Sequence record: MN445185.1
Length of the DNA: 64,000 nucleotides
Direction: 5' to 3' (one strand)
The notes beneath the pieces were generated by a model, which made no database searches, was not told the origin of the DNA, and worked only from the letters and a program-made list of their open reading frames with translations. Each line of letters opens with the position of its first letter. Position 1 is the first letter of the stretch. A program made the position numbers and the translations under genes. Positions 1 through 20,465 of the stretch are shown here, piece by piece.

Positions 1-80
1 TATTAAGATCTTAAAACGCGTGCGGGCGCGCGCGTGATCCTTATTAAGAGATCGTGATCGGACGGAAGACCGAGATCGGG
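1..80. repeat. GATC-dense, CG-rich palindromic segment
   Basis: GATC at 7, 36, 50, 56 and 74; TTAAGATCTTAA palindrome (3-14 region); ACGCG..CGCGT inverted repeat; TATTAAGA repeated at 1 and 42. Confidence 0.45.
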
Positions 81-207
81 TACCCTGTGTATTTTTTACG
101 TGGTTTCCCTATCGTGTGTTCAGACCACCACTCGATGTCCAAAAACCCATAGCTTCGGTGGTCGCCTCCCTGGTCGGTAGACTCTGACAAGTCGACCCAC
201 AACACCA

Positions 208-232
208 ACCCGTCCGGGGACGGATTTTTATT
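208..232 (+). terminator. Intrinsic terminator-like hairpin
   Basis: CCGTC-cggg-GACGG followed by ATTTTTATT. Confidence 0.45.
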
Positions 233-287
233 CCAACGACAAGCTCCACGAAAATCCCCGCAGAGGGACTCACTGCTGTGTGACTCA

Positions 288-327
288 CCGGCTCCTGGAC
301 GCCTACGCCTCGAGCCGGTAATTTTTT
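288..327 (+). terminator. Intrinsic terminator-like hairpin
   Basis: CCGGCTC(288-294)/GAGCCGG(312-318) followed by TAATTTTTT. Confidence 0.5.
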
Positions 328-354
328 GATTACGTGAGTTTGTTGTTATATGCG

Positions 355-930
355 AATAGCGATTGACCGCGCCAATGGTCCAATCACTTTTAAACCCTGC
401 ACGCTAGGGCTCCAAGTCCTGGGACTGATACCCAGGACGCTTTTTCGAAAATACCTACCGTGGTGTCTTCGACAAAGCGCAATCTAACACTGCGTGATTT
501 ATTATGTTCTGGAAAACTTTCGCCGTGGAACAGAACCGGTGAGCGTCGGCGGGGATTCCGACAATCACCACCCATTCAGGTACTCGGTAGATAACCGACC
601 TGCCGACGGTGCTACGTCGGGCGTAGTTCGGTTTGCGAGAGTGTCGAGAAAGTCGACTGCGCACCCATGACAAAATCCGAGTTGACCGTGGCAGCGCCAG
701 AGGACTGGGCAGCGGAGAGACGTCGTTGAACTTACCTCCGATAGTTATCGCTGATTCCGCTCTGGCGTCGGGCCAAAACTGATTCGAATTCGGCGTTGCG
801 TCGAAAAGGGGTCTGCGTGTAGAACCGCAGACTTGGGGGATAACTCCAAAGTGGGGTGATCGGATCTTGACGGCTCGGAACAGACGAGAGGGGTGGGTAC
901 TCCCGTTGTGAAACGCCAGTACCTGGCTGA
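355..930 (+). ncRNA. Candidate large structured non-coding RNA (~580 nt); family unknown, strand inferred
   Basis: No credible ORF. Stems: 416-423/431-438, 584-588/594-598 inside 577-580/599-602, 603-608/615-620, 694-702/760-768, 811-817/826-832, and a GNRA hairpin 904-915 inside 896-900/919-923. Confidence 0.5.
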
Positions 931-984
931 TTAAAATTTACAGATTCTGCGTGAGGTATGATAAACCAAACGGAGAATTAAACC

Positions 985-1560
985 ATGAACTTGTATCGCA
1001 TCGGGTTTTACCGGAACGAGGTACCAGAATCGGTTTTGGTTGTCTTAGCCGAAAACGAGGAGCAGGCCAAATCCTTCTGGCCGGTTAGCGCAGAGCGTAC
1101 AGCGGTTGCGTGCTGCTACGACGGTCCAGTTGCCGCAACGGATGTCGCTGCAGGCGTAGTCCTGAAGATGGGCCGATGGGAAGATTACTCCCATCCCGGT
1201 TTGGAGTTTGTTTCCGAACCTGCCAGACATTCCTGGGAATTTCCCTCAGGCAACACCGAGACGTATTTCGGATTTCAGGTTAAACAACCTTCGACGCTCA
1301 AACTGTACCTGGTGTACAGCGACGCCGCTACCGAAGACTACGTCGATTCCGGAATCATCGTCGGGGCAACAACCCCTGCTGCGGCATTCGCACATTGGGA
1401 CGGTGATAAACCCGGAATCGTTTCGGTCTGTGAGCTACCACTTGAAGCCGGTTTGGTTACGAACATCAAGTGTGAGCAAGGCCAGGAGCTGACTTGGATC
1501 CGCCAGGATTACCTGACGGAAACGACATTCGAGTACACACCGAGGAAGGTGACCCAATGA
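985..1560 (+). CDS. Hypothetical protein with two copies of a small domain also found in 2283-2525
   Basis: 191-aa ORF, SD GGAG, stop overlaps next start (ATGA). Confidence 0.8.
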   Translation: MNLYRIGFYRNEVPESVLVVLAENEEQAKSFWPVSAERTAVACCYDGPVAATDVAAGVVLKMGRWEDYSHPGLEFVSEPARHSWEFPSGNTETYFGFQVKQPSTLKLYLVYSDAATEDYVDSGIIVGATTPAAAFAHWDGDKPGIVSVCELPLEAGLVTNIKCEQGQELTWIRQDYLTETTFEYTPRKVTQ

Positions 1561-2048
1561 CGACGATAGCGTTCGACGGAAAAGTCTTAGCTGCTGACGG
1601 TCAGCTGACCCGCGGGTCGAATATCTGCAACCTGAACACCCAGAAGTTATTCATCTGCCCTTCTGACGAGGAATGGTGGATTACTGGTGAACGGATTGTG
1701 GCGTTCGGAGTAAGCGGTGACATCACAGGACAGTTGGCCCTGCTGGAAACGGTCCGCTTGAGACCCGGCTACAAGGGGTTAACACAAAGCTCGCAGTTAC
1801 CTGCGAAGATGGATTTTACTTTCCTGATGCTTTTGGCCTCAGGAAAAGCGATAGTCGGCGGAAAACGTGAAGACGACGTGACGTTGTGGTGGAGTGAAGC
1901 CACACCACCTCTGGCAACCGGAAGCGGTTACGAGTATGCGTTGGGTGCGATGAAGATGGGCGCGAATGCGGTTCGTGCTGTTGAGATTGCGTCCGAATGC
2001 GATATCTACACCGGTGGTGAGATTAGCACTTACGAACTACGGAGGTGA
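1557..2048 (+). CDS. HslV/proteasome-beta-like Ntn (Thr) protease
   Basis: Start at ATG 1557 gives MTTIAFDGKVLAADGQLTRG; Thr1, Asp13 and Lys29 have the same D-K spacing as HslV D17/K33; ATGSG and CDIYTGG motifs. Confidence 0.75.
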   Translation: MTTIAFDGKVLAADGQLTRGSNICNLNTQKLFICPSDEEWWITGERIVAFGVSGDITGQLALLETVRLRPGYKGLTQSSQLPAKMDFTFLMLLASGKAIVGGKREDDVTLWWSEATPPLATGSGYEYALGAMKMGANAVRAVEIASECDIYTGGEISTYELRR

Positions 2049-2051
2049 ATC

Positions 2052-2102
2052 ATGCGGGAGTCAGAAGCACGCAAGCTTGACCCCATCAATCGCCTGCGAT
2101 AA
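2052..2102 (+). CDS. Possible 16-aa small ORF (MRESEARKLDPINRLR)
   Basis: Strong SD GGAGGTG (2041-2047) before ATG 2052; TAA at 2100-2102. Confidence 0.3.
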   Translation: MRESEARKLDPINRLR

Positions 2103-2140
2103 CGGGGTAGCGCATCCGTATAAACACGTTCAAGAATTCT

Positions 2141-2216
2141 AGGAAAGTGACGCAATTGGTAGCGTACCGGTCTCCAAAACCGGCTGTTTAGAGTTCGAGT
2201 CTCTACTTTCCTGCCA
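2141..2216 (+). tRNA. trnW: tRNA-Trp (CCA)
   Basis: Acceptor AGGAAAG/CTTTCCT; anticodon arm CCGGT-CTCCAAA-ACCGG; T arm TAGAG-TTCGAGT-CTCTA; encoded 3' CCA; 76 nt. Confidence 0.97.
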
Positions 2217-2282
2217 CATTTAGCCAACAAGGCCATGATTCAAAGCAGAATGACACCGAATGTCTAACTGCGGAGAATAATC

Positions 2283-2525
2283 ATGAACTTGTATTTGCTA
2301 GAACGAACTGACGATATCGGGTATGATGAATTTGATTCCATAATCGTGGCGGCTCCTACGGAGCAAGCCGCGTGTGCAATTCCTCCCGACCGTGGTCATT
2401 GGATGGACTGCCGCTGGTTACCGAAAGAGCGCTGGGATGAAGGGCTTACCCTGACCGTTACTCTTATCGGTACTACGCACTATCCTGCTGGGACCGTCGT
2501 TCATGAATCGTTCAATGCTGGCTAA
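2283..2525 (+). CDS. Small hypothetical protein, paralogous domain to 985-1560
   Basis: 80 aa, SD GGAG; MNLYLL...SIIVAAPTEQAA pattern. Confidence 0.8.
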   Translation: MNLYLLERTDDIGYDEFDSIIVAAPTEQAACAIPPDRGHWMDCRWLPKERWDEGLTLTVTLIGTTHYPAGTVVHESFNAG

Positions 2526-3300
2526 ACAGTGGGCTTCGGCCCACTAACCCTATTCGAGCCGTGATACTTACTCAGATTGTGCGGGTTGATGTCCCGCATG
2601 AGCCGGTAGCAGCTCAGACCTACGGTAGACCAATAAATCCGTAGCAGCCAGGTACACAAAGCACCAGGTCGCTTGTACAGGATGCTGGGTATCTGACCGG
2701 TCATAACCTCATTCGATACGAGACACGTTTATGCATGAAATACTCCAGTACATCAGGATGTTGATTTCCAACATCCGGTTCTGGGTATTCAGTCATGTTT
2801 GGTTTACAGGCGATGGGTTTTCCCGTAAGGGCCCCACTTACAGACTGGCGTCTCCACGACAACCGTCCCTAGGGGACAGGCAAGCACCGGCCCATTAAGC
2901 CGCTACGCTACGCCTGTAAATCCACAATCTGATAACCGAATGGGATTGAGTTCCCAGTGTTAGGGTGACTGTGTGTCACCGTAGGCGCGGTACCTCATAC
3001 GGCCGGTACGCCACGAATGTACGTGATAGCGGGTGGTGCTTGGAGACGCTAAGACCTGACCTTACGGACAGGCTCAGAAGAAGAAGTCCATCACCTGTAT
3101 TCAGAAATGAATTTAGGTTAATTATTGGAAGTGGCGAAATCACTTACGTGATAACTTAGTAGTATGCAACGAACAATACCAGAGTGACTTTACGAGGTTA
3201 CTGTGGTATATGTCGGTGCGCCGGGCAACGTGTTGCCGCAGATAAGCCCGAGGGAGCTGAGTGCACTAACACACGCCGGGATGCACCGGCACCTTACAAC
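2526..3300 (+). ncRNA. Candidate structured ncRNA region (one or several RNAs)
   Basis: No credible ORF. Stems: 2528-2545 (UUCG loop), 2580-85/2593-98, 2620-25/2639-44, 2756-63/2769-76, 2803-12/2911-20, 2964-69/2975-80, 3212-19/3283-90. Confidence 0.5.
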
Positions 3301-3370
3301 GGCTTTGTAGCTCAGGTAGGTAGAGCAGCCTCTTCGAGGAAGGTCGCTGGTTCGAGACCGGTCAAAGCAA
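3301..3370 (+). ncRNA. tRNA-like RNA lacking an anticodon loop
   Basis: Acceptor GCTTTG/CAAAGC; D arm GCTC-AGGTAGGTA-GAGC; variable loop AGGTC; T arm GCTGG-TTCGAGA-CCGGT; anticodon arm only 13 nt (CCTC-TTC-GAGG); no CCA. Confidence 0.75.
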
Positions 3371-3450
3371 GAGCAGCGAAGTTAGAGGAATTAACACCCG
3401 ACTCATAATCGGATATTTCGACGGTTCGAATCCCTGCCACTTGCTCGCCC
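3371..3450 (+). pseudogene. Degenerate tRNA-Met/Ile2 (CAT)
   Basis: Anticodon arm CCGA-CTCATAA-TCGG; D stem GTTA/TAAC; GGTTCGAATCC T-loop with broken T stem; acceptor GAGCA/TGCTC; ends GCCC rather than CCA. Confidence 0.65.
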
Positions 3451-3452
3451 TA

Positions 3453-3736
3453 TTTGTGTTATCCTTATCCCGAAGGCATTCGAAATAAGACGCGTATCCA
3501 CACACGGGTCAAGGATAACACGAACCACTTCCGCGGTCACCGTGTCCATTGCCGCCTACCTGCATGGGCTGTCCTCCGACACGGTGACTTCGGGCCAAAT
3601 TACAGACCAGGGCCGTTTGGGTTTTTCTTACGCATCCGTCCAGAGCCACCTCGAGCCCTGGTTTGTTCTCCCTTTTCTGTTCCTAGTTAGCCAACTAAAT
3701 CAATTAAGCCTGGTGCGTTGCCCTGGGAACAGAAAA
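3453..3736 (+). ncRNA. Array of four long-stem, large-loop hairpins
   Basis: Stems 3456-66/3511-21, 3536-46/3578-88, 3603-13/3655-65 and 3673-86/3723-36 (11-14 bp); loops 31-41 nt; stems unrelated in sequence. Confidence 0.65.
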
Positions 3737-3828
3737 ACTTATTCGGTTACACACCGAACCCACCCACGAGGGATATGTCGTGGACTACCAATAGAAGCAG
3801 CAATAGTAGAAGTAAGAAGGAAAGCAAC

Positions 3829-4650
3829 ATGTTTACAGTTAAACGTGTGATTGATGGTGACCGCATTATTACCGAACATGAAAAAGTTCGTATCGGTGAC
3901 CGTAAGTCTCGTGTATTCCGCGAGGCATTAAAAATGCTCGAGAACGAGCGATTCGACATTGTTGTCGATGATGAAAAGTTAGCCCTTAATCCGGGGTTAA
4001 AACGCGTTGCCCCTGATGTGCCTGATCCGAACACCATGCATTTGTCTGACTACTGCAGCTGGTCGCACAGATTATATAAAAGTCAGGTTTATGCACACAC
4101 GTATTTGCGGCAGCTTTTCCCCAACCTTATTATCCCCGATTTGGAAACGGTCGAGGTGTTTAACTGCAACGCACGCGAGTTTATTAGCTACGTGCTAGAT
4201 AATAAGGGCAATGCTATCTTGGTACTGGACACAAGTTCCAGTATACCTGATGCTGTGGCTAGCATACGTGGTGAAATCATCGGTTACGGTACTCCCCCAG
4301 AGAAATTAGGCTGGTACAAACCATCTCCTGATAGCGACATGGCGATCATTGTCTACACTCAGGAAGAACTGCAACAAGTCGAATTAGAGCCTGGCCCATC
4401 TATCGAGTTCACTGATGTCCAGGAGCAGTCGCAGTGGATTAACGGTGAGTCTGTTGTTACTGTTTTAAAAGGCGCTCGCCCTGGCGACCGGTCAGTCGAT
4501 GAACTGATTGGCGCAATGTGCATCGAAGAAGAATCTGGATACGATCCTGATAACCAGATCAGTACCGGTGCGTTGTACGAACTGTTTTATAAAGGCGACG
4601 AAGTCTACGTGGTTAACTCTCACGGTAAGACTACCGACGCCCTTCGCTGA
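3829..4650 (+). CDS. Hypothetical protein
   Basis: ORF 3718-4650; better start is ATG 3829 after AAGGA; the upstream extension overlaps the hairpin array. Confidence 0.85.
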   Translation: MFTVKRVIDGDRIITEHEKVRIGDRKSRVFREALKMLENERFDIVVDDEKLALNPGLKRVAPDVPDPNTMHLSDYCSWSHRLYKSQVYAHTYLRQLFPNLIIPDLETVEVFNCNAREFISYVLDNKGNAILVLDTSSSIPDAVASIRGEIIGYGTPPEKLGWYKPSPDSDMAIIVYTQEELQQVELEPGPSIEFTDVQEQSQWINGESVVTVLKGARPGDRSVDELIGAMCIEEESGYDPDNQISTGALYELFYKGDEVYVVNSHGKTTDALR

Positions 4651-18741: not shown

Positions 18742-20109
18742 GTGAGAAAGGTACCAAAATTCTACGGAATATCCGGCCGGTTGGTTAGTCAGGATAACTA
18801 TTTGTCCGATTTGCAAATAGAAGCTGCTGCCAAAGGTATTAAACCACCCACTATTATTAACGATGTCGCCGTTAACGGGGATGCGATCGAGGTTGCTGAA
18901 CTTATCGATCGCATGGTACAGAACAGAATCGTTGACGAAGAACTGAACTCTGCACCGATTTGTAGTTTGGATTGTCCGGCACCGATCGCGCATCGTTACA
19001 ATCTCGGTTGTAAGTGTCCGACGTGTGGCTATGTTGTAACTGAACATCGAATTGAATCCGATGTCTGGTTACGTGCACCTGATGAAATGGGTAACTTCGT
19101 CAACCCACGATTCTGGGCAATGTTCAATGCTTTCTTTAATAGCAAGTTGAAGAAGTTTGAACGTAACAAGGTCACTATCGAACGCGGTAATGACTTGATG
19201 ATGTGGATGATTGACCCGTATTACCGTATAGAAGAACCAGACGGTAAACGCGCACATGCTGTGAAACGTGTATTGGAAGAACATGGTTTCGTTCGTGGCT
19301 TGCGCAATCTGGTTGATAACCACGTTAGTATCTTTAACATCCTTACCACGCCAGAAGCCTGGAAGGAAATCTTCGCACCTAATCGGCATAACGCCGCTGA
19401 AGGTGAACGCTTACGTTTACAATGGAAGGAGCTATTCGAAACGCAACGACACGCATTCTTCCCAAGACACTTACCGCTAATCTCCTCTAAACTTATCGTT
19501 ACTGAGGAAGGTCGTCGTGGTGTCATGGTAGACCCAGTGTTCACGGGTGCTATTGATGCGGTGAAAAATATCGCGTTGCTCTATACGCGGCGTAAAGCGA
19601 TCGAACCACGTTTTCTGATTAGTCGTGCTTTGAAAGCGAACCGTCAGTTAACGTACTTCCACATGGACTTCCGTCGTGAGTCTATGGAAGGTAAACCGGG
19701 TGACTATCGTGCGAAATTGGGTTCTACCCACATCCCGTTCGGTGGTCGTGCAACCATCTCACCTATCTCAGAACCACATGATGCCTGGAAGTTAAAAGCA
19801 CCATGGCGTTGGATGGTTGGGTTGATGTCGACCCACATCGAGAACAAACTGCTACGACGCGGTTATTCGTCACGGCAGTGTGAACGTATCGTTGCGAAAG
19901 CGGCAATGCAGTATGACCCGCTTGTAGATGAAATCTTTAAAGAACTGATTCGTGAATCCCCAGGCGGTCTTGGGATCATGGTCATACCGCTACGTAACCC
20001 AACGCTGGTACAGTTGTCTATTCAAACGCTGTACATCGATGAAGTTGTTACCGATGTTAACCAGTGTTCGCTGCGTATCTCTGACCGTGTGATCAAGATG
20101 GCTAACGGT
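18742..20109 (+). CDS. Non-virion RNAP beta' N-terminal subunit (phiKZ gp55-like), exon 1
   Basis: Zn-binding C-x3-C...CKCPTC; GKPGDYRAKLGS..GGRATI; RNPTL; ends MANG at the 5' splice site. Confidence 0.92.
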
Positions 20110-20465
20110 TCGAAAAGAGCCCCATCGGACGGGAAACCTCTGATGCGTATTCTCCTGAAATGCTGGGAAACCCTAAAGCGTATCTACCAGAAATGGGGAC
20201 GAAAGTCTGAAACAACAGATACGATGGCCTACGCTAAACAATACTGCTAACGGTTGTGATAATGGGTAATCAGCAGCGAAGCCTCGTGAGAGGAACGTTC
20301 AACGACTATCGCTGAAATGCGAGTAGGGGTCCCAGTGGACTTCGAAGTGGGAGAACACCTAAGGCGATAGCTATGGTGAAGATATAGTCTGTGCCTTATC
20401 GAGAGATAAGGAGGGTGTCTTAGCACACCTGCTGTATACGGAAACGGTATACGGTGGACAAACAG
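20110..20465 (+). mobile_element. Group I intron (IA-type core), 356 nt, no homing endonuclease
   Basis: P AAATGCTGGGAAA (20158-70); Q AATCAGCAG (20268-76); R TTCAACGACTAT (20298-309); S AAGATATAGTC (20379-89); P7 GACTA/TAGTC; P3 TTCTCC/GGAGAA; P1 with U-G pair at 5' splice site; terminal G at 20465. Confidence 0.93.

Follow-up and report, generated by a model that had tools for sequence, protein, structure and literature searches.

A putative new family of large structured RNAs in SPN3US-like nucleus-forming jumbo phages

In the genome of Escherichia phage vB_EcoM_EC001 (EC001), an SPN3US-like nucleus-forming jumbo phage, we identified a structured element at about positions 352-930 of the plus strand that we favor, with a rough probability of 0.6, as a member of a new family of large, structured RNAs in phages that has not been described before. 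All coordinates refer to the window, that is, the whole 64,000-nt stretch analyzed (positions 1-64000 of MN445185.1). A new class appears to be the right reading because the element combines a conserved multi-helix fold of the plus strand with the lack of any Rfam match even at E<=10; this supports the interpretation of an earlier note, made without database searches, which proposed a large RNA, possibly of a new class. That a single 580-nt molecule accumulates is inferred from sequence alone, and several smaller RNAs or a processed leader are not ruled out; shorter RNAs are conceivable because the hairpin 416-438 with the following U5 looks like an intrinsic terminator and a promoter-like motif is present at 485-506. 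In the literature searched, we found neither an earlier description of the element nor, for any SPN3US-like phage, data on its transcript or on the 5' and 3' ends.

A non-coding plus-strand fold maintained by compensatory substitutions

The element consists of the following features.

352-930, plus strand: candidate structured RNA body (~579 nt in EC001), with covariation and no Rfam match
361-409, plus strand: 5' extension, folding into hairpins at 361-385 and 395-409 (single-sequence folds)
416-479, plus strand: first part of the universal core, a GC-rich hairpin (416-438), then the invariant CUUUUUCGA, then a long helix
480-496, plus strand: hairpin or loop displaying the conserved CCUAACAC (CUAACAC at 484-490)
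506-569, plus strand: lineage-specific insertion, helices 506-511/531-536 and 538-542/565-569 with the conserved loop GCGGGGA
579-687, plus strand: closing helix 579-587/677-687 (GGUACUCGG / CCGAGU-UG-ACC) around a variable domain (588-676)
689-775, plus strand: central domain, UGGC 689-692/GCCA 772-775, 9-bp helix 694-702/760-768 and hairpin 723-741
789-849, plus strand: three adjoining hairpins, 789-795/799-805, 811-817/826-832 and 833-838/844-849 (CM alignment, 22 sequences)
853-861, plus strand: purine-rich, Shine-Dalgarno-like tract GGGGUGAUC
865-893, plus strand: most conserved block, UCUUG.CGGCUCGG.A(.)AGACGAGAGGGG (alignments, four genera)
891-928, plus strand: terminal hairpin with a GNRA tetraloop at 908-911 (covariation), the probable RNA 3' end

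The minimum free energy of the plus strand, -221.7 kcal/mol, is low compared to dinucleotide shuffles (z = -3.3), but that of the minus strand is likewise low (z = -3.8), so that folding energy alone cannot choose the strand. The strand is resolved by the RNAalifold consensus (20 helices with a total of 122 pairs), obtained from a MAFFT alignment of 10 sequences, in which G-U cells vastly outnumber A-C cells (144 vs 7), indicating that only the plus strand folds. In this consensus, 97.8% of the cells are paired, compared to 36-46% when the partners are slid, and 30 of the 122 pairs show compensatory (double) changes, against 0-7 in the slid controls. Covariation was assessed in three tests, on this alignment, on a 22-sequence CM alignment and on a 14-sequence alignment of three genera. 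Across the three, 90-98% of the cells were paired (34-48% in slid controls), with 21-30 compensatory pairs (0-10 in the controls), and the observed covariation score was reached by none of 500 shuffles in each test. Thus, about 20 helices, formed by the plus strand only, are maintained by compensatory substitutions across four genera. The covariation was found on independent MAFFT alignments as well as on the CM alignment, and the covarying helices extend through nearly the whole flagged interval, which the earlier note described as a nearly continuous run of stems.

In the 10-sequence alignment, no positions of the 5' part (352-575) covary with the 3' part, and two long-range helices proposed by RNAalifold (370-373/925-928 and 569-573/893-897) can be neither accepted nor rejected because they never vary. 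The long-range pairing of TTCGAC (468-473) with GTCGAA (800-805), which the earlier note considered possible, is unsupported and was rejected because each arm belongs to a local covarying helix; in particular, 468-472 pairs with 445-449, within the 16-pair covarying helix 438-455/462-479, and 799-805 pairs with the nearby 789-795. The RNAalifold helix CCG 686-688/CGG 871-873 was rejected because C686 and C687 are part of the covarying helix 579-587/677-687 and U689 covaries with A775, not with A870.

The element is non-coding. The longest plus-strand ORFs within 350-935 are only 45-58 aa long, the open frames are not kept between close relatives, the substitutions lack 3-periodicity (16/17/23, 40/45/39 and 63/56/55), and the indels are mainly 1-2 nt long, in agreement with the earlier claim that there is no credible ORF. 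Pfam yielded no matches for four neighboring ORFs and is uninformative for the coding question here, given that the neighboring real ORFs also lack a match.

No known RNA family could be recognized in the element either. It had no match in the Rfam 15 scan of the whole 64-kb window at the gathering score, nor in the scan of positions 1-4000 and five diverged homologues at E<=10. The covariance models of ROOL (RF03087) and GOLLD (RF01998) did not match EC001 or any of the five diverged homologues even at E<=10, and the same threshold produced no match to the Rfam models of group I and group II introns, RNase P RNA, tmRNA or 6S RNA; no tmRNA was found in EC001 by ARAGORN.

Domain architecture and predicted transcription signals

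The 5' extension is present in Seoulvirus and Erskinevirus and missing from the short Machinavirus form. In single-sequence folds, its two hairpins form in each phage despite sequence change (GAUUGACC/GGUCCAAUC vs UUCUCA/UGAGAA, and CCCUG/UAGGG vs UCUGC/GCAGA). In the first part of the universal core, TTTTTCGA is invariant in all 15 sequences compared, from four genera, and CTTTTTCGA together with GACAAAG is kept in most of them, with GGAAAAC in Wellingtonvirus. The long helix 438-455/462-479 (16 pairs, 6 with compensatory changes, 98% paired) includes the U-run, which pairs with the conserved GACAAAG; a terminator scan flags the hairpin 416-438 with this same U-run (U5). The CCUAACAC loop is conserved in three genera, with differing flanking stems (GGGA/UCCC in pSal-SNUABM-04, ACGU.CG/CGACGU in ChrisDB and GCG/CGC in EC001), and the stem at 480-496 is weak in EC001. 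The insertion 506-569 is found only in Seoulvirus and Erskinevirus, with compensatory changes in its helices (consensus helices 6-8).

The closing helix 579-587/677-687 (10 pairs, 99% paired, 3 compensatory) encloses a domain that ranges from ~32 to 109 nt among phages. Its arms change together across genera (ACUCGG/CCGAGU, ACUCAG/CUGAGU, AUCUGGC/GCCGGGU and UUCGGUC/GACCGG) and, read by eye, are CUUGUC/GACAAG in homologue L008. In the central domain, the helix 689-692/772-775 is 100% paired, and its inner pair is UA in 7, CG in 6 and UG in 1 of 14 sequences. The 9-bp helix 694-702/760-768 (G694-U768 to G702-C760), tested on 14 sequences of Seoulvirus, Erskinevirus and Machinavirus, is 92% paired with 3 compensatory pairs, and holds exactly as first described in the earlier note. 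Nested in the domain is the hairpin 723-741, which presents AACUUAC (729-735) as a conserved heptaloop; 95% of its cells are paired, and 2 of its pairs are compensatory. The three adjoining hairpins (789-805, 811-832 and 833-849) contain 3, 6 and 3 compensatory pairs and are 98%, 96% and 89% paired, respectively.

The best-conserved part of the element is the 3' module (853-930), which consists of a 16S-complementary tract, an invariant block of ~28 nt and the GNRA hairpin. The block 865-893, nearly invariant in alignments of 12, 14 and 22 sequences from four genera, contains the hairpin CUCG 874-877/CGAG 885-888 with the loop GAACAGA. In the terminal hairpin, 9 of the 14 pairs show compensatory changes, with 97% pairing in the 22-sequence CM alignment. 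The tetraloop is always GNRA with a varying N (GUGA, GAGA, GGGA or GCGA in relatives), and EC001 has CGUU-GUGA-AACG at 904-915, so that the GNRA loop noticed there earlier is borne out, on a covarying stem. We infer that the RNA ends at or just past this hairpin, with the caveat that, in EC001, it is followed by CUGAUUAAAAUUU without a canonical U-tract; a U6 run is present only in Wellingtonvirus-type sequences, and the terminator scan did not flag the hairpin.

The tract 853-861 has the family consensus GGAGGUGAUCC(AA), the complement of the 16S rRNA 3' end. Using a verified 16S sequence, we found that each homologue can form 7-17 contiguous pairs with the 16S 3' tail at the tract, 7-15 of these Watson-Crick; in Asesino, the run comprises 17 pairs, 15 of which are Watson-Crick. 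In four lineages, the tract shows recurrent A/G changes (GAUC/GGUC) that preserve pairing to a fixed U, and no consistent internal pairing partner of the tract was predicted. The argument is nevertheless post hoc. With G-U pairs allowed, EC001's own 9-nt run is at chance level, with ~90 runs of at least 9 in the window compared to 105 in shuffles, which is not significant; a 16S-complementary 13-mer with up to 3 mismatches in EC001 is also at chance level, and single-sequence ensembles show no enrichment of the tract for the unpaired state. An apparent resemblance of conserved 9-mers (CGGAAAGAC, GAACUUACC) to 23S and 16S rRNA segments was dropped because their order is not collinear and chance 9-mer matches are expected.

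Outside the body, we recognized the following features.

96-327, plus strand: upstream context, comprising P1, a short leader and two terminator-like hairpins
96-118, plus strand: promoter-like P1, TTAC 96-99 ... TGTG 115-118
210-223, plus strand: terminator-like hairpin, then U5
287-318, plus strand: terminator-like hairpin, then U6
326-352, plus strand: promoter-like P2, a T-run, TTAC 330-333, a 15-nt spacer and TATG 349-352
934-960, plus strand: promoter-like P3 for the downstream gene, AAAATTTAC ... GGTATG (motif 938-960), with motif and spacing as in P2
3301-3370: tRNA-like element

The middle promoters of phiKZ are characterized by the motif AAanTTACc at about -24 plus T(-3)ATG(+1) (PMC4666361). 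P2, which is conserved in Seoulvirus and Erskinevirus, fits the phiKZ middle/late promoter motif and its spacing, with the C of TTAC at -19 and TATG ending at +1, and 4 of the 7 matches to TTAC-N14-17-TATG in the window are located within the first 3.2 kb. Transcription likely starts at G352, although this is predicted by the motif alone, and both the activity of P2 and its recognition by an SPN3US-type polymerase are inferred. The two terminator-like hairpins that the earlier note placed just upstream are indeed there, at 210-223 and 287-318. In Machinavirus (pSal-SNUABM-04 and Huxley), P1 directly precedes the RNA core, without the leader, the terminators or P2. P3 is present in EC001, Asesino and Wellingtonvirus and missing from pSal-SNUABM-04, Huxley, pEa_SNUABM_9, SPAsTU and pEa_SNUABM_29, where an RBS and ATG come directly after the RNA. 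The motif at 485-506 is weaker, with TAAC instead of TTAC.

Distribution, genomic setting and size variants

Homologues of the element were identified in ~60 phage records and metagenome contigs, all from one clade, in the genera Seoulvirus, Erskinevirus, Machinavirus and Wellingtonvirus. In the databases searched, the family does not extend beyond this SPN3US-like clade, whose members are nucleus-forming jumbo phages: all true matches to the conserved 3' block in IMG/VR and metagenomes belong to this clade, the motif of this block had no exact matches in 185,579 bacterial and archaeal reference genomes, and the use of the upstream gene as a query for more distant loci returned the same clade only. 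A looser metagenome motif scan yielded additional matches in high-GC soil contigs, which we consider chance because all other features are missing and the contigs score below 23 bits with the covariance model. The element is conserved far better than the neighboring proteins: the upstream protein is 52-58% identical between genera, compared to 76-80% for the 3' module at the nucleotide level.

The element is located within a 1,757-nt stretch without genes that spans the record ends, with non-coding sequence on both flanks. The tRNA-Trp gene at 2141-2216, the sole ARAGORN find, is ~1.2 kb 3' of the element. The gene 3' of the element differs by lineage: it encodes 191 aa in EC001 (ATG at 985), whereas in SPN3US the HslV-like gene follows directly, and other ORFs are found elsewhere. 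A conserved, very AT-rich block of ~100 bp, 350 nt from the element, is flanked by CG-alternating tracts and GATC clusters and has an origin-like look. A genuine group I intron is present elsewhere in the 64-kb window.

The length of the element varies from 415 nt in Machinavirus through ~580 nt in EC001 to ~750 nt in Wellingtonvirus, with a shared core. The minimal Machinavirus form comprises one promoter-like motif followed by every core element, without an internal promoter motif. In Kwan and Wellington, an HNH-endonuclease cassette of ~615 nt with its own terminator, absent from sister phages, parts the 3' module from the rest, which implies that physical continuity of the element is not essential. 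ChrisDB-type phages repeat a "hairpin + CUUUUCGAG" module. This size series, together with the natural split, makes domain dissection straightforward.

Possible role and competing explanations

Under the preferred reading, the phage's own multisubunit RNA polymerase would transcribe the element from TTAC-N15-TATG, starting at G352 and proceeding to the GNRA hairpin, and the element would be a stable RNA gene in the phage tRNA/non-coding island rather than a leader tied to any single gene. That it is independent of the gene downstream is supported by the change of this gene between lineages and by the presence of P3 in EC001, Asesino and Wellingtonvirus; against it, the next gene in Machinavirus, SPAsTU and pEa_SNUABM_29 lacks a promoter motif, which fits a leader. 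The RNA would be modular, with a variable, lineage-expandable 5'/central scaffold carrying the conserved loops CCUAACAC and AACUUAC, followed by the 3' module. This module may offer the 16S-complementary tract beside the invariant hairpin block for docking on the host 30S subunit, the docked RNA would sequester or recruit ribosomes in the middle phase of infection, and the large scaffold would provide stability, or multimerization as in other ornate phage RNAs. The docking is no more than a weak hypothesis, and the function is unknown. A bolder version, in which an RNA of ~0.4-0.75 kb pairs with the anti-Shine-Dalgarno through its invariant 3' module, docks on the 30S subunit and possibly forms a multimeric scaffold, is unlikely; if true, it would amount to RNA-based capture or re-programming of ribosomes for phage mRNAs that have left the phage nucleus. 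The SPN3US/phiKZ-like nucleus-forming phages, which infect E. coli, Salmonella and Erwinia and are experimentally tractable and intensively studied, still pose open questions about transcription, mRNA export and access to ribosomes. More generally, large covarying RNAs of unknown function are rare, and new classes have opened biology, as with ribozymes, OLE, and the ROOL and GOLLD cages.

Similarly to ROOL and GOLLD, the element is phage-encoded, several hundred nucleotides long, rich in covarying helices, devoid of ORFs, located in a tRNA/non-coding island and of unknown function. As in GOLLD, the 3' region is conserved family-wide and the 5' region is variable; ribosomes have been reported bound to GOLLD in pull-downs (bioRxiv 10.1101/2024.12.08.627333), a parallel to the 16S-complementary tract. 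However, the element matches neither covariance model in sequence or structure, and the known hosts differ, namely, Lactobacillales and rumen and lake phages or prophages in the case of ROOL and GOLLD, as opposed to strictly lytic, nucleus-forming jumbo phages of enterobacteria. A further difference is that the motif of the element is absent from the bacterial and archaeal reference genomes scanned. Thus, the GOLLD/ROOL-like setting suggested in the earlier note held (a phage, proximity to tRNA-Trp and a non-coding island), but the likeness is an analogy of size, setting and ornateness, not homology, and the data are silent on multimeric cages such as the homo-octameric, RNA-only nanocage of ROOL. 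OLE, raiA and HEARO are of the same size class and share conserved junctions and loops among covarying stems, but these are chromosomal bacterial RNAs, whereas the element is phage-borne, matches none of their covariance models and lacks an adjoining protein gene such as OapA or IsrB. The non-coding RNAs of phiKZ (Grad-seq, dRNA-seq) come from a related Chimalliviridae phage that also uses its own RNA polymerases, but those described are ~100 nt long, with no homologue of the element reported among them. The element also resembles leader-peptide and Shine-Dalgarno-sequestering attenuators (the ermC leader is an example) and RNAs of processive antitermination (such as put in phage HK022) in the Shine-Dalgarno-like tract, the nearby complementary CUCC, the possible short ORF and the stable hairpin just before a gene, but is ten times larger, with neither the ORF frame nor the downstream gene conserved, and in several lineages that gene has its own promoter-like element.

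The strongest competing explanation, a possible one, is that the element is a giant structured cis-regulatory 5' leader of the downstream operon (gp1, HslV-like peptidase and tRNA-Trp). The 3' module would then be a translational switch, with GGGG 835-838, CUCC 844-847 and the tract 853-861 pairing in two alternative ways, and a UUG start at 867-869 would open a short upstream ORF through the GNRA hairpin. In favor of a leader, the next RBS and ATG are within 25-40 nt, without an intervening TTAC..TATG, in pSal-SNUABM-04, Huxley, pEa_SNUABM_9, SPAsTU and pEa_SNUABM_29; the UUG frame is a 20-codon ORF (MAARK/EDERG...) in 8 of 17 homologues, with the conserved UGA of GCUGA as the stop; and the CUCC just upstream is the predicted pairing partner of the tract in several homologues. 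Conversely, the next gene has its own promoter-like element in EC001, Asesino, Kwan and L008 and is not conserved between lineages, and a leader of 400-600 nt with ~20 helices would far exceed known bacterial leaders. The short ORF was rejected as such because its frame is broken by a 1-nt insertion throughout the SPN3US/EC001 subgroup, shortened to 13 codons in Wellingtonvirus by its GAGA loops and extended in L015 and SPAsTU; furthermore, none of the three codon positions varies over a stretch of 27 nt, which points to a constraint on RNA, not on a peptide. It is less likely that the region is composed of several distinct small RNAs and transcription signals in a row, with a different reason for the conservation of each. 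This view can appeal to the terminator-like hairpins (210-223, 287-318 and 416-438), the promoter-like motifs (96-118, 330-352, 485-506 and 938-960), the repeated module of the ChrisDB-type phages, the viability of Kwan and Wellington with the element split, and the lack of covariation-backed pairing between the 5' and 3' parts. But the 415-nt Machinavirus form has a single promoter-like motif with all core elements, the U-run after 416-438 is a strand of the covarying 16-pair helix, the domain-closing helices covary across 109 nt (579-687) and 87 nt (689-775), and the 485-506 motif, with its TAAC, is missing from two lineages that retain the CCUAACAC loop.

Two other explanations appear very unlikely. 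A DNA-level element, for example a packaging signal or part of the replication origin, in which the hairpins would be extruded from the DNA, could be suggested by the origin-like AT-rich block nearby. But this block is a separate conserved island, the excess of G-U over A-C cells shows that a single strand folds, and both the GNRA loop with a free N and the numerous compensatory changes are hallmarks of RNA. A decayed mobile ribozyme (a remnant of a group I or group II intron) or a protein gene missed by annotation could be invoked given the HNH endonuclease ORF within the element in Kwan and Wellington, the true group I intron in the window, and annotated ORFs such as Huxley gp278, in a frame that stays open over 154-165 codons in Huxley itself, in pSal-SNUABM-04 and in L039. 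However, none of six homologues has a match to an intron model at E<=10, flanking exons are absent, and the HNH cassette, with its own terminator, is missing from sister phages. The long-ORF reading was rejected because the frame is only 47 codons long in L051, a close relative, and 23-107 codons long elsewhere, with a translation that shifts in and out of frame between relatives and no codon periodicity. Several public records annotate spurious "hypothetical protein" ORFs inside the element, and these annotations need correcting.

Evidence for RNA structure

The window covers bases 1-64000 of the genome of Escherichia phage vB_EcoM_EC001 (MN445185.1; hereafter EC001), a jumbo phage of 240 kb that is SPN3US-like (Seoulvirus). 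Because the first annotated gene of its linear record begins at 985 and the final gene ends at 239427, the flagged interval lies within a gene-free stretch of 1,757 nt that runs across the record ends. An earlier note had proposed that 355-930 encodes a large structured phage RNA, possibly of a new class, which proved essentially right: the presence of a conserved structured RNA element is very likely (probability about 0.9), and we regard the finding as real and assign the element to a new family of large structured RNAs from phages. The fuller account of this family is held less firmly but is, on balance, favoured.

With a folding energy of -221.7 kcal/mol, the interval has z = -3.3 relative to dinucleotide shuffles, and its reverse strand has z = -3.8; by itself, the thermodynamic evidence is thus weak and cannot select a strand. 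Covariation among homologues, in contrast, was found in three alignment tests, beyond both slid and shuffled controls. When 22 sequences were aligned over 782-931 with a covariance model, 95.2% of the cells were paired compared to 34-47% with slid partners, and 22 pairs had changed on both sides (4-10 in the slid controls). The whole element, aligned by MAFFT alone from 10 Seoulvirus and Erskinevirus sequences and folded with RNAalifold, yielded 20 helices comprising 122 pairs, with 97.8% paired cells (36-46% slid) and 30 compensatory pairs (0-7 slid). For 684-933, a MAFFT alignment of 14 sequences including Machinavirus, evaluated with a structure that we wrote from EC001, gave 90.3% paired cells (35-48% slid) and 21 compensatory pairs (2-7 slid). 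In each of the three tests, all 500 column shuffles stayed below the observed covariation score, and the tests agree that the element is an RNA structure. The 122 pairs include 144 G-U cells versus 7 A-C cells and, therefore, the + strand is the folding strand. Among the homologues, the terminal hairpin is capped by GUGA, GAGA, GGGA or GCGA, always GNRA.

Several specific predictions of the earlier note were borne out, namely, helix 694-702/760-768, exactly as given, the GNRA stem-loop at 904-915 (tetraloop 908-911), and two upstream terminator-like hairpins (210-223 followed by U5, and 287-318 followed by U6). Its tentative pairing of 468-473 with 800-805 failed because each arm is engaged in a local covarying helix.

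Rfam 15 scans of EC001 and five diverged homologues returned no match for the element, whether the gathering score or E<=10 served as the cut-off, and ARAGORN found no tmRNA. ROOL, GOLLD, OLE, raiA, HEARO, intron, RNase P RNA and 6S RNA were excluded, without an Rfam match. Neither a description of the element nor a transcriptome for any SPN3US-like phage was present in the searched literature; the non-coding RNAs on record for phiKZ are ~100 nt long.

Anatomy, coding potential and distribution

Features of the EC001 element (+ strand) and, in the last two rows, of the region downstream
330-352: promoter-like element 5' of the element, a T-run, TTAC (330-333), N15 and TATG (349-352)
361-385 and 395-409: two hairpins of the 5' extension
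416-438: GC-rich hairpin
438-455/462-479: 16-pair helix, in which invariant CUUUUUCGA pairs with conserved GACAAAG
484-490: loop displaying CCUAACAC
506-536 and 538-569: two lineage-specific helices
579-587/677-687: closing helix enclosing the variable domain
689-692/772-775 and 694-702/760-768: central domain, including a hairpin with heptaloop AACUUAC (729-735)
789-805, 811-832 and 833-849: three hairpins
853-861: purine-rich tract of the 3' module
865-893: invariant block of the 3' module, with hairpin 874-888
891-928: GNRA hairpin of the 3' module
2141-2216: tRNA-Trp, downstream of the element
2525-3830: second non-coding, gene-poor island, beyond tRNA-Trp

Among phiKZ promoters, the middle ones feature AAanTTACc near -24, whereas TATG, whose G is +1, marks the late ones (PMC4666361). 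Given the resemblance of the EC001 motif to these promoters and its recurrence, with the same spacing, ahead of gene 1 (938-960) and, in a TGTG version, at 96-118, transcription is inferred, from sequence alone, to start at G352. A conserved palindrome, CGAAUUCG (784-793), longer in Asesino, ChrisDB and homologues L019 and L015 (CCGAAUUCGG), lies at the 5' foot of hairpin 789-805; its GGAUUC and AGAUUC variants preserve partial self-pairing via G-U, and it might mediate RNA dimerisation.

The element is not coding. The + strand ORFs in 350-935 do not exceed 58 aa, in line with the earlier note, which saw no credible ORF, substitutions relative to EC001 are evenly spread over the three phases, and indels are largely 1-2 nt. 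Long minus-strand open frames (160 codons in EC001, 67 in SPFM4 and pEa_SNUABM_29) result from the purine richness of the + strand. In Huxley (annotated gp278), pSal-SNUABM-04 and homologue L039, a + strand frame stays open over 154-165 codons; it spans 47 codons in a close relative (L051) and 23-107 elsewhere, with translation slipping in and out of register. From UUG at 867, 3' of the tract, a 20-codon frame reaches a conserved UGA in 8 of the 17 homologues; a 1-nt insertion shifts it throughout the SPN3US/EC001 subgroup, GAGA loops truncate it in Wellingtonvirus, and in two others it runs on. Every codon position is invariant, so the constraint acts on the RNA.

In public records, small ORFs in the non-coding stretch, several within the RNA element itself, are annotated as "hypothetical protein": Huxley gp278 (L011 1153-1566), Asesino gp288 and gp289 (L004), two in Kwan (L009 223-420 and 645-836, -), and others in homologues L005 (1354-1473, 1704-1832) and L003 (1314-1592, -). 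All are likely to be spurious because the gp278 frame is not conserved among relatives and the others are unannotated in sister records.

Blastn detected the element in ~60 phage records from four genera, with Salmonella, E. coli, Proteus and Erwinia as hosts. Scanning IMG/VR and metagenomes with the most conserved motif added contigs from the same phage clade only, and 185,579 bacterial and archaeal reference genomes contained no exact match to it. The 3' part of the element retains 76-80% DNA identity, with a ~28-nt block (865-893) essentially invariant, whereas the neighbouring protein is just 52-58% identical between genera; thus, this part is more strongly constrained than the flanking genes. 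The total size is 415 nt in pSal-SNUABM-04 and Huxley, where the core directly follows the first promoter-like element, the 5' extension is missing and the variable domain is short; ChrisDB-type phages have a leader of 200 nt, and Wellingtonvirus-type sequences reach ~750 nt. The family therefore consists of a common core and an expandable periphery.

One RNA or several, gene or leader

The element could comprise several RNAs or signals rather than one RNA, given the terminator-like hairpins, a weak internal promoter-like motif (485-506), the lack of covariation linking the 5' third to the rest, and a ~615-nt cassette immediately 5' of the tract in Kwan and Wellington. Against this, the minimal form has one promoter motif only, the U-run 3' of hairpin 416-438 forms one side of a covarying helix, and domain-closing helices cover ~100 nt. 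At least the 3' module (853-930) is a separable unit. The cassette (L009 880-1500 in Kwan; L025 in Wellington) consists of a hairpin with a T8 terminator, an HNH endonuclease ORF and a hairpin; it is inserted inside the RNA gene, with a degenerate tract copy persisting at the left junction, and is missing in sister phages L008, L018 and L026.

A cis-acting leader or switch also remains possible, as an RBS and ATG directly follow the RNA in pSal-SNUABM-04, Huxley, pEa_SNUABM_9, SPAsTU and pEa_SNUABM_29. However, a promoter-like element lies 3' of the terminal hairpin in EC001, Asesino, Kwan and L008, and the downstream gene differs between lineages. For these reasons, an RNA gene, perhaps processed from a longer transcript, is favoured over a leader that serves a single gene; the nearby tRNA must likewise be processed from a longer transcript.

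The 16S-complementary tract and the surrounding region

The family consensus at 853-861, GGAGGUGAUCC(AA), is the exact complement of the 16S rRNA 3' end, the sequence of which was confirmed by comparison with all 5,426 E. coli genomes. All homologues form 7-17 contiguous pairs here (7-15 Watson-Crick), with the run of 17 (15 Watson-Crick) in Asesino; the 9-nt run of EC001 itself is at chance level when G-U pairs are allowed. An A/G alternation (GAUC/GGUC) recurs in four lineages, as would be compatible with a pairing partner that is always U. The tract does not stay open in single-sequence ensembles, and its predicted internal partners vary by phage, often being CUCC immediately upstream, a pairing that could form a switch. 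As a mode of action, a ribosome-directed role via this module is the most concrete hypothesis, although a weak one. The bolder scenario, in which the module would pair with 16S rRNA and dock the RNA on the host 30S subunit, appears unlikely.

Around the element, a promoter-like element (TTAC 96-99, TGTG 115-118) precedes a short structured leader closing with two terminator-like hairpins, conceivably a separate small RNA of ~100-210 nt; the entire segment (96-327) is missing in the Machinavirus phages pSal-SNUABM-04 and Huxley. Further upstream, a ~100-bp extremely AT-rich block (1-80 plus the last ~170 bases of the record, L014 2330-2501) contains near-invariant GTGATCCTTATTAAGAGATC, has alternating CG tracts and a GATC site cluster on its flanks, and is ~70-80% conserved across all four genera; it might be a replication origin or early-promoter cluster, which it resembles. 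Pfam searches with four neighbouring ORFs gave no match. The first EC001 gene (985-1560, 191 aa) is missing from SPN3US (L013), where an HslV-like gene lies directly 3' of the RNA, and the gene content of this slot varies across the clade (985-2048 compared with L013). The island at 2525-3830 contains two further TTAC..TATG promoter-like motifs (3144-3166 and 3190-3212) and a tRNA-like element (3301-3370) that scores 33.6 bits as an Rfam tRNA, has an abnormal anticodon loop and is not called by ARAGORN; the island might harbour more RNA genes. A group I intron is present at 20090-20411 (69.4 bits against Rfam RF00028, full model covered).
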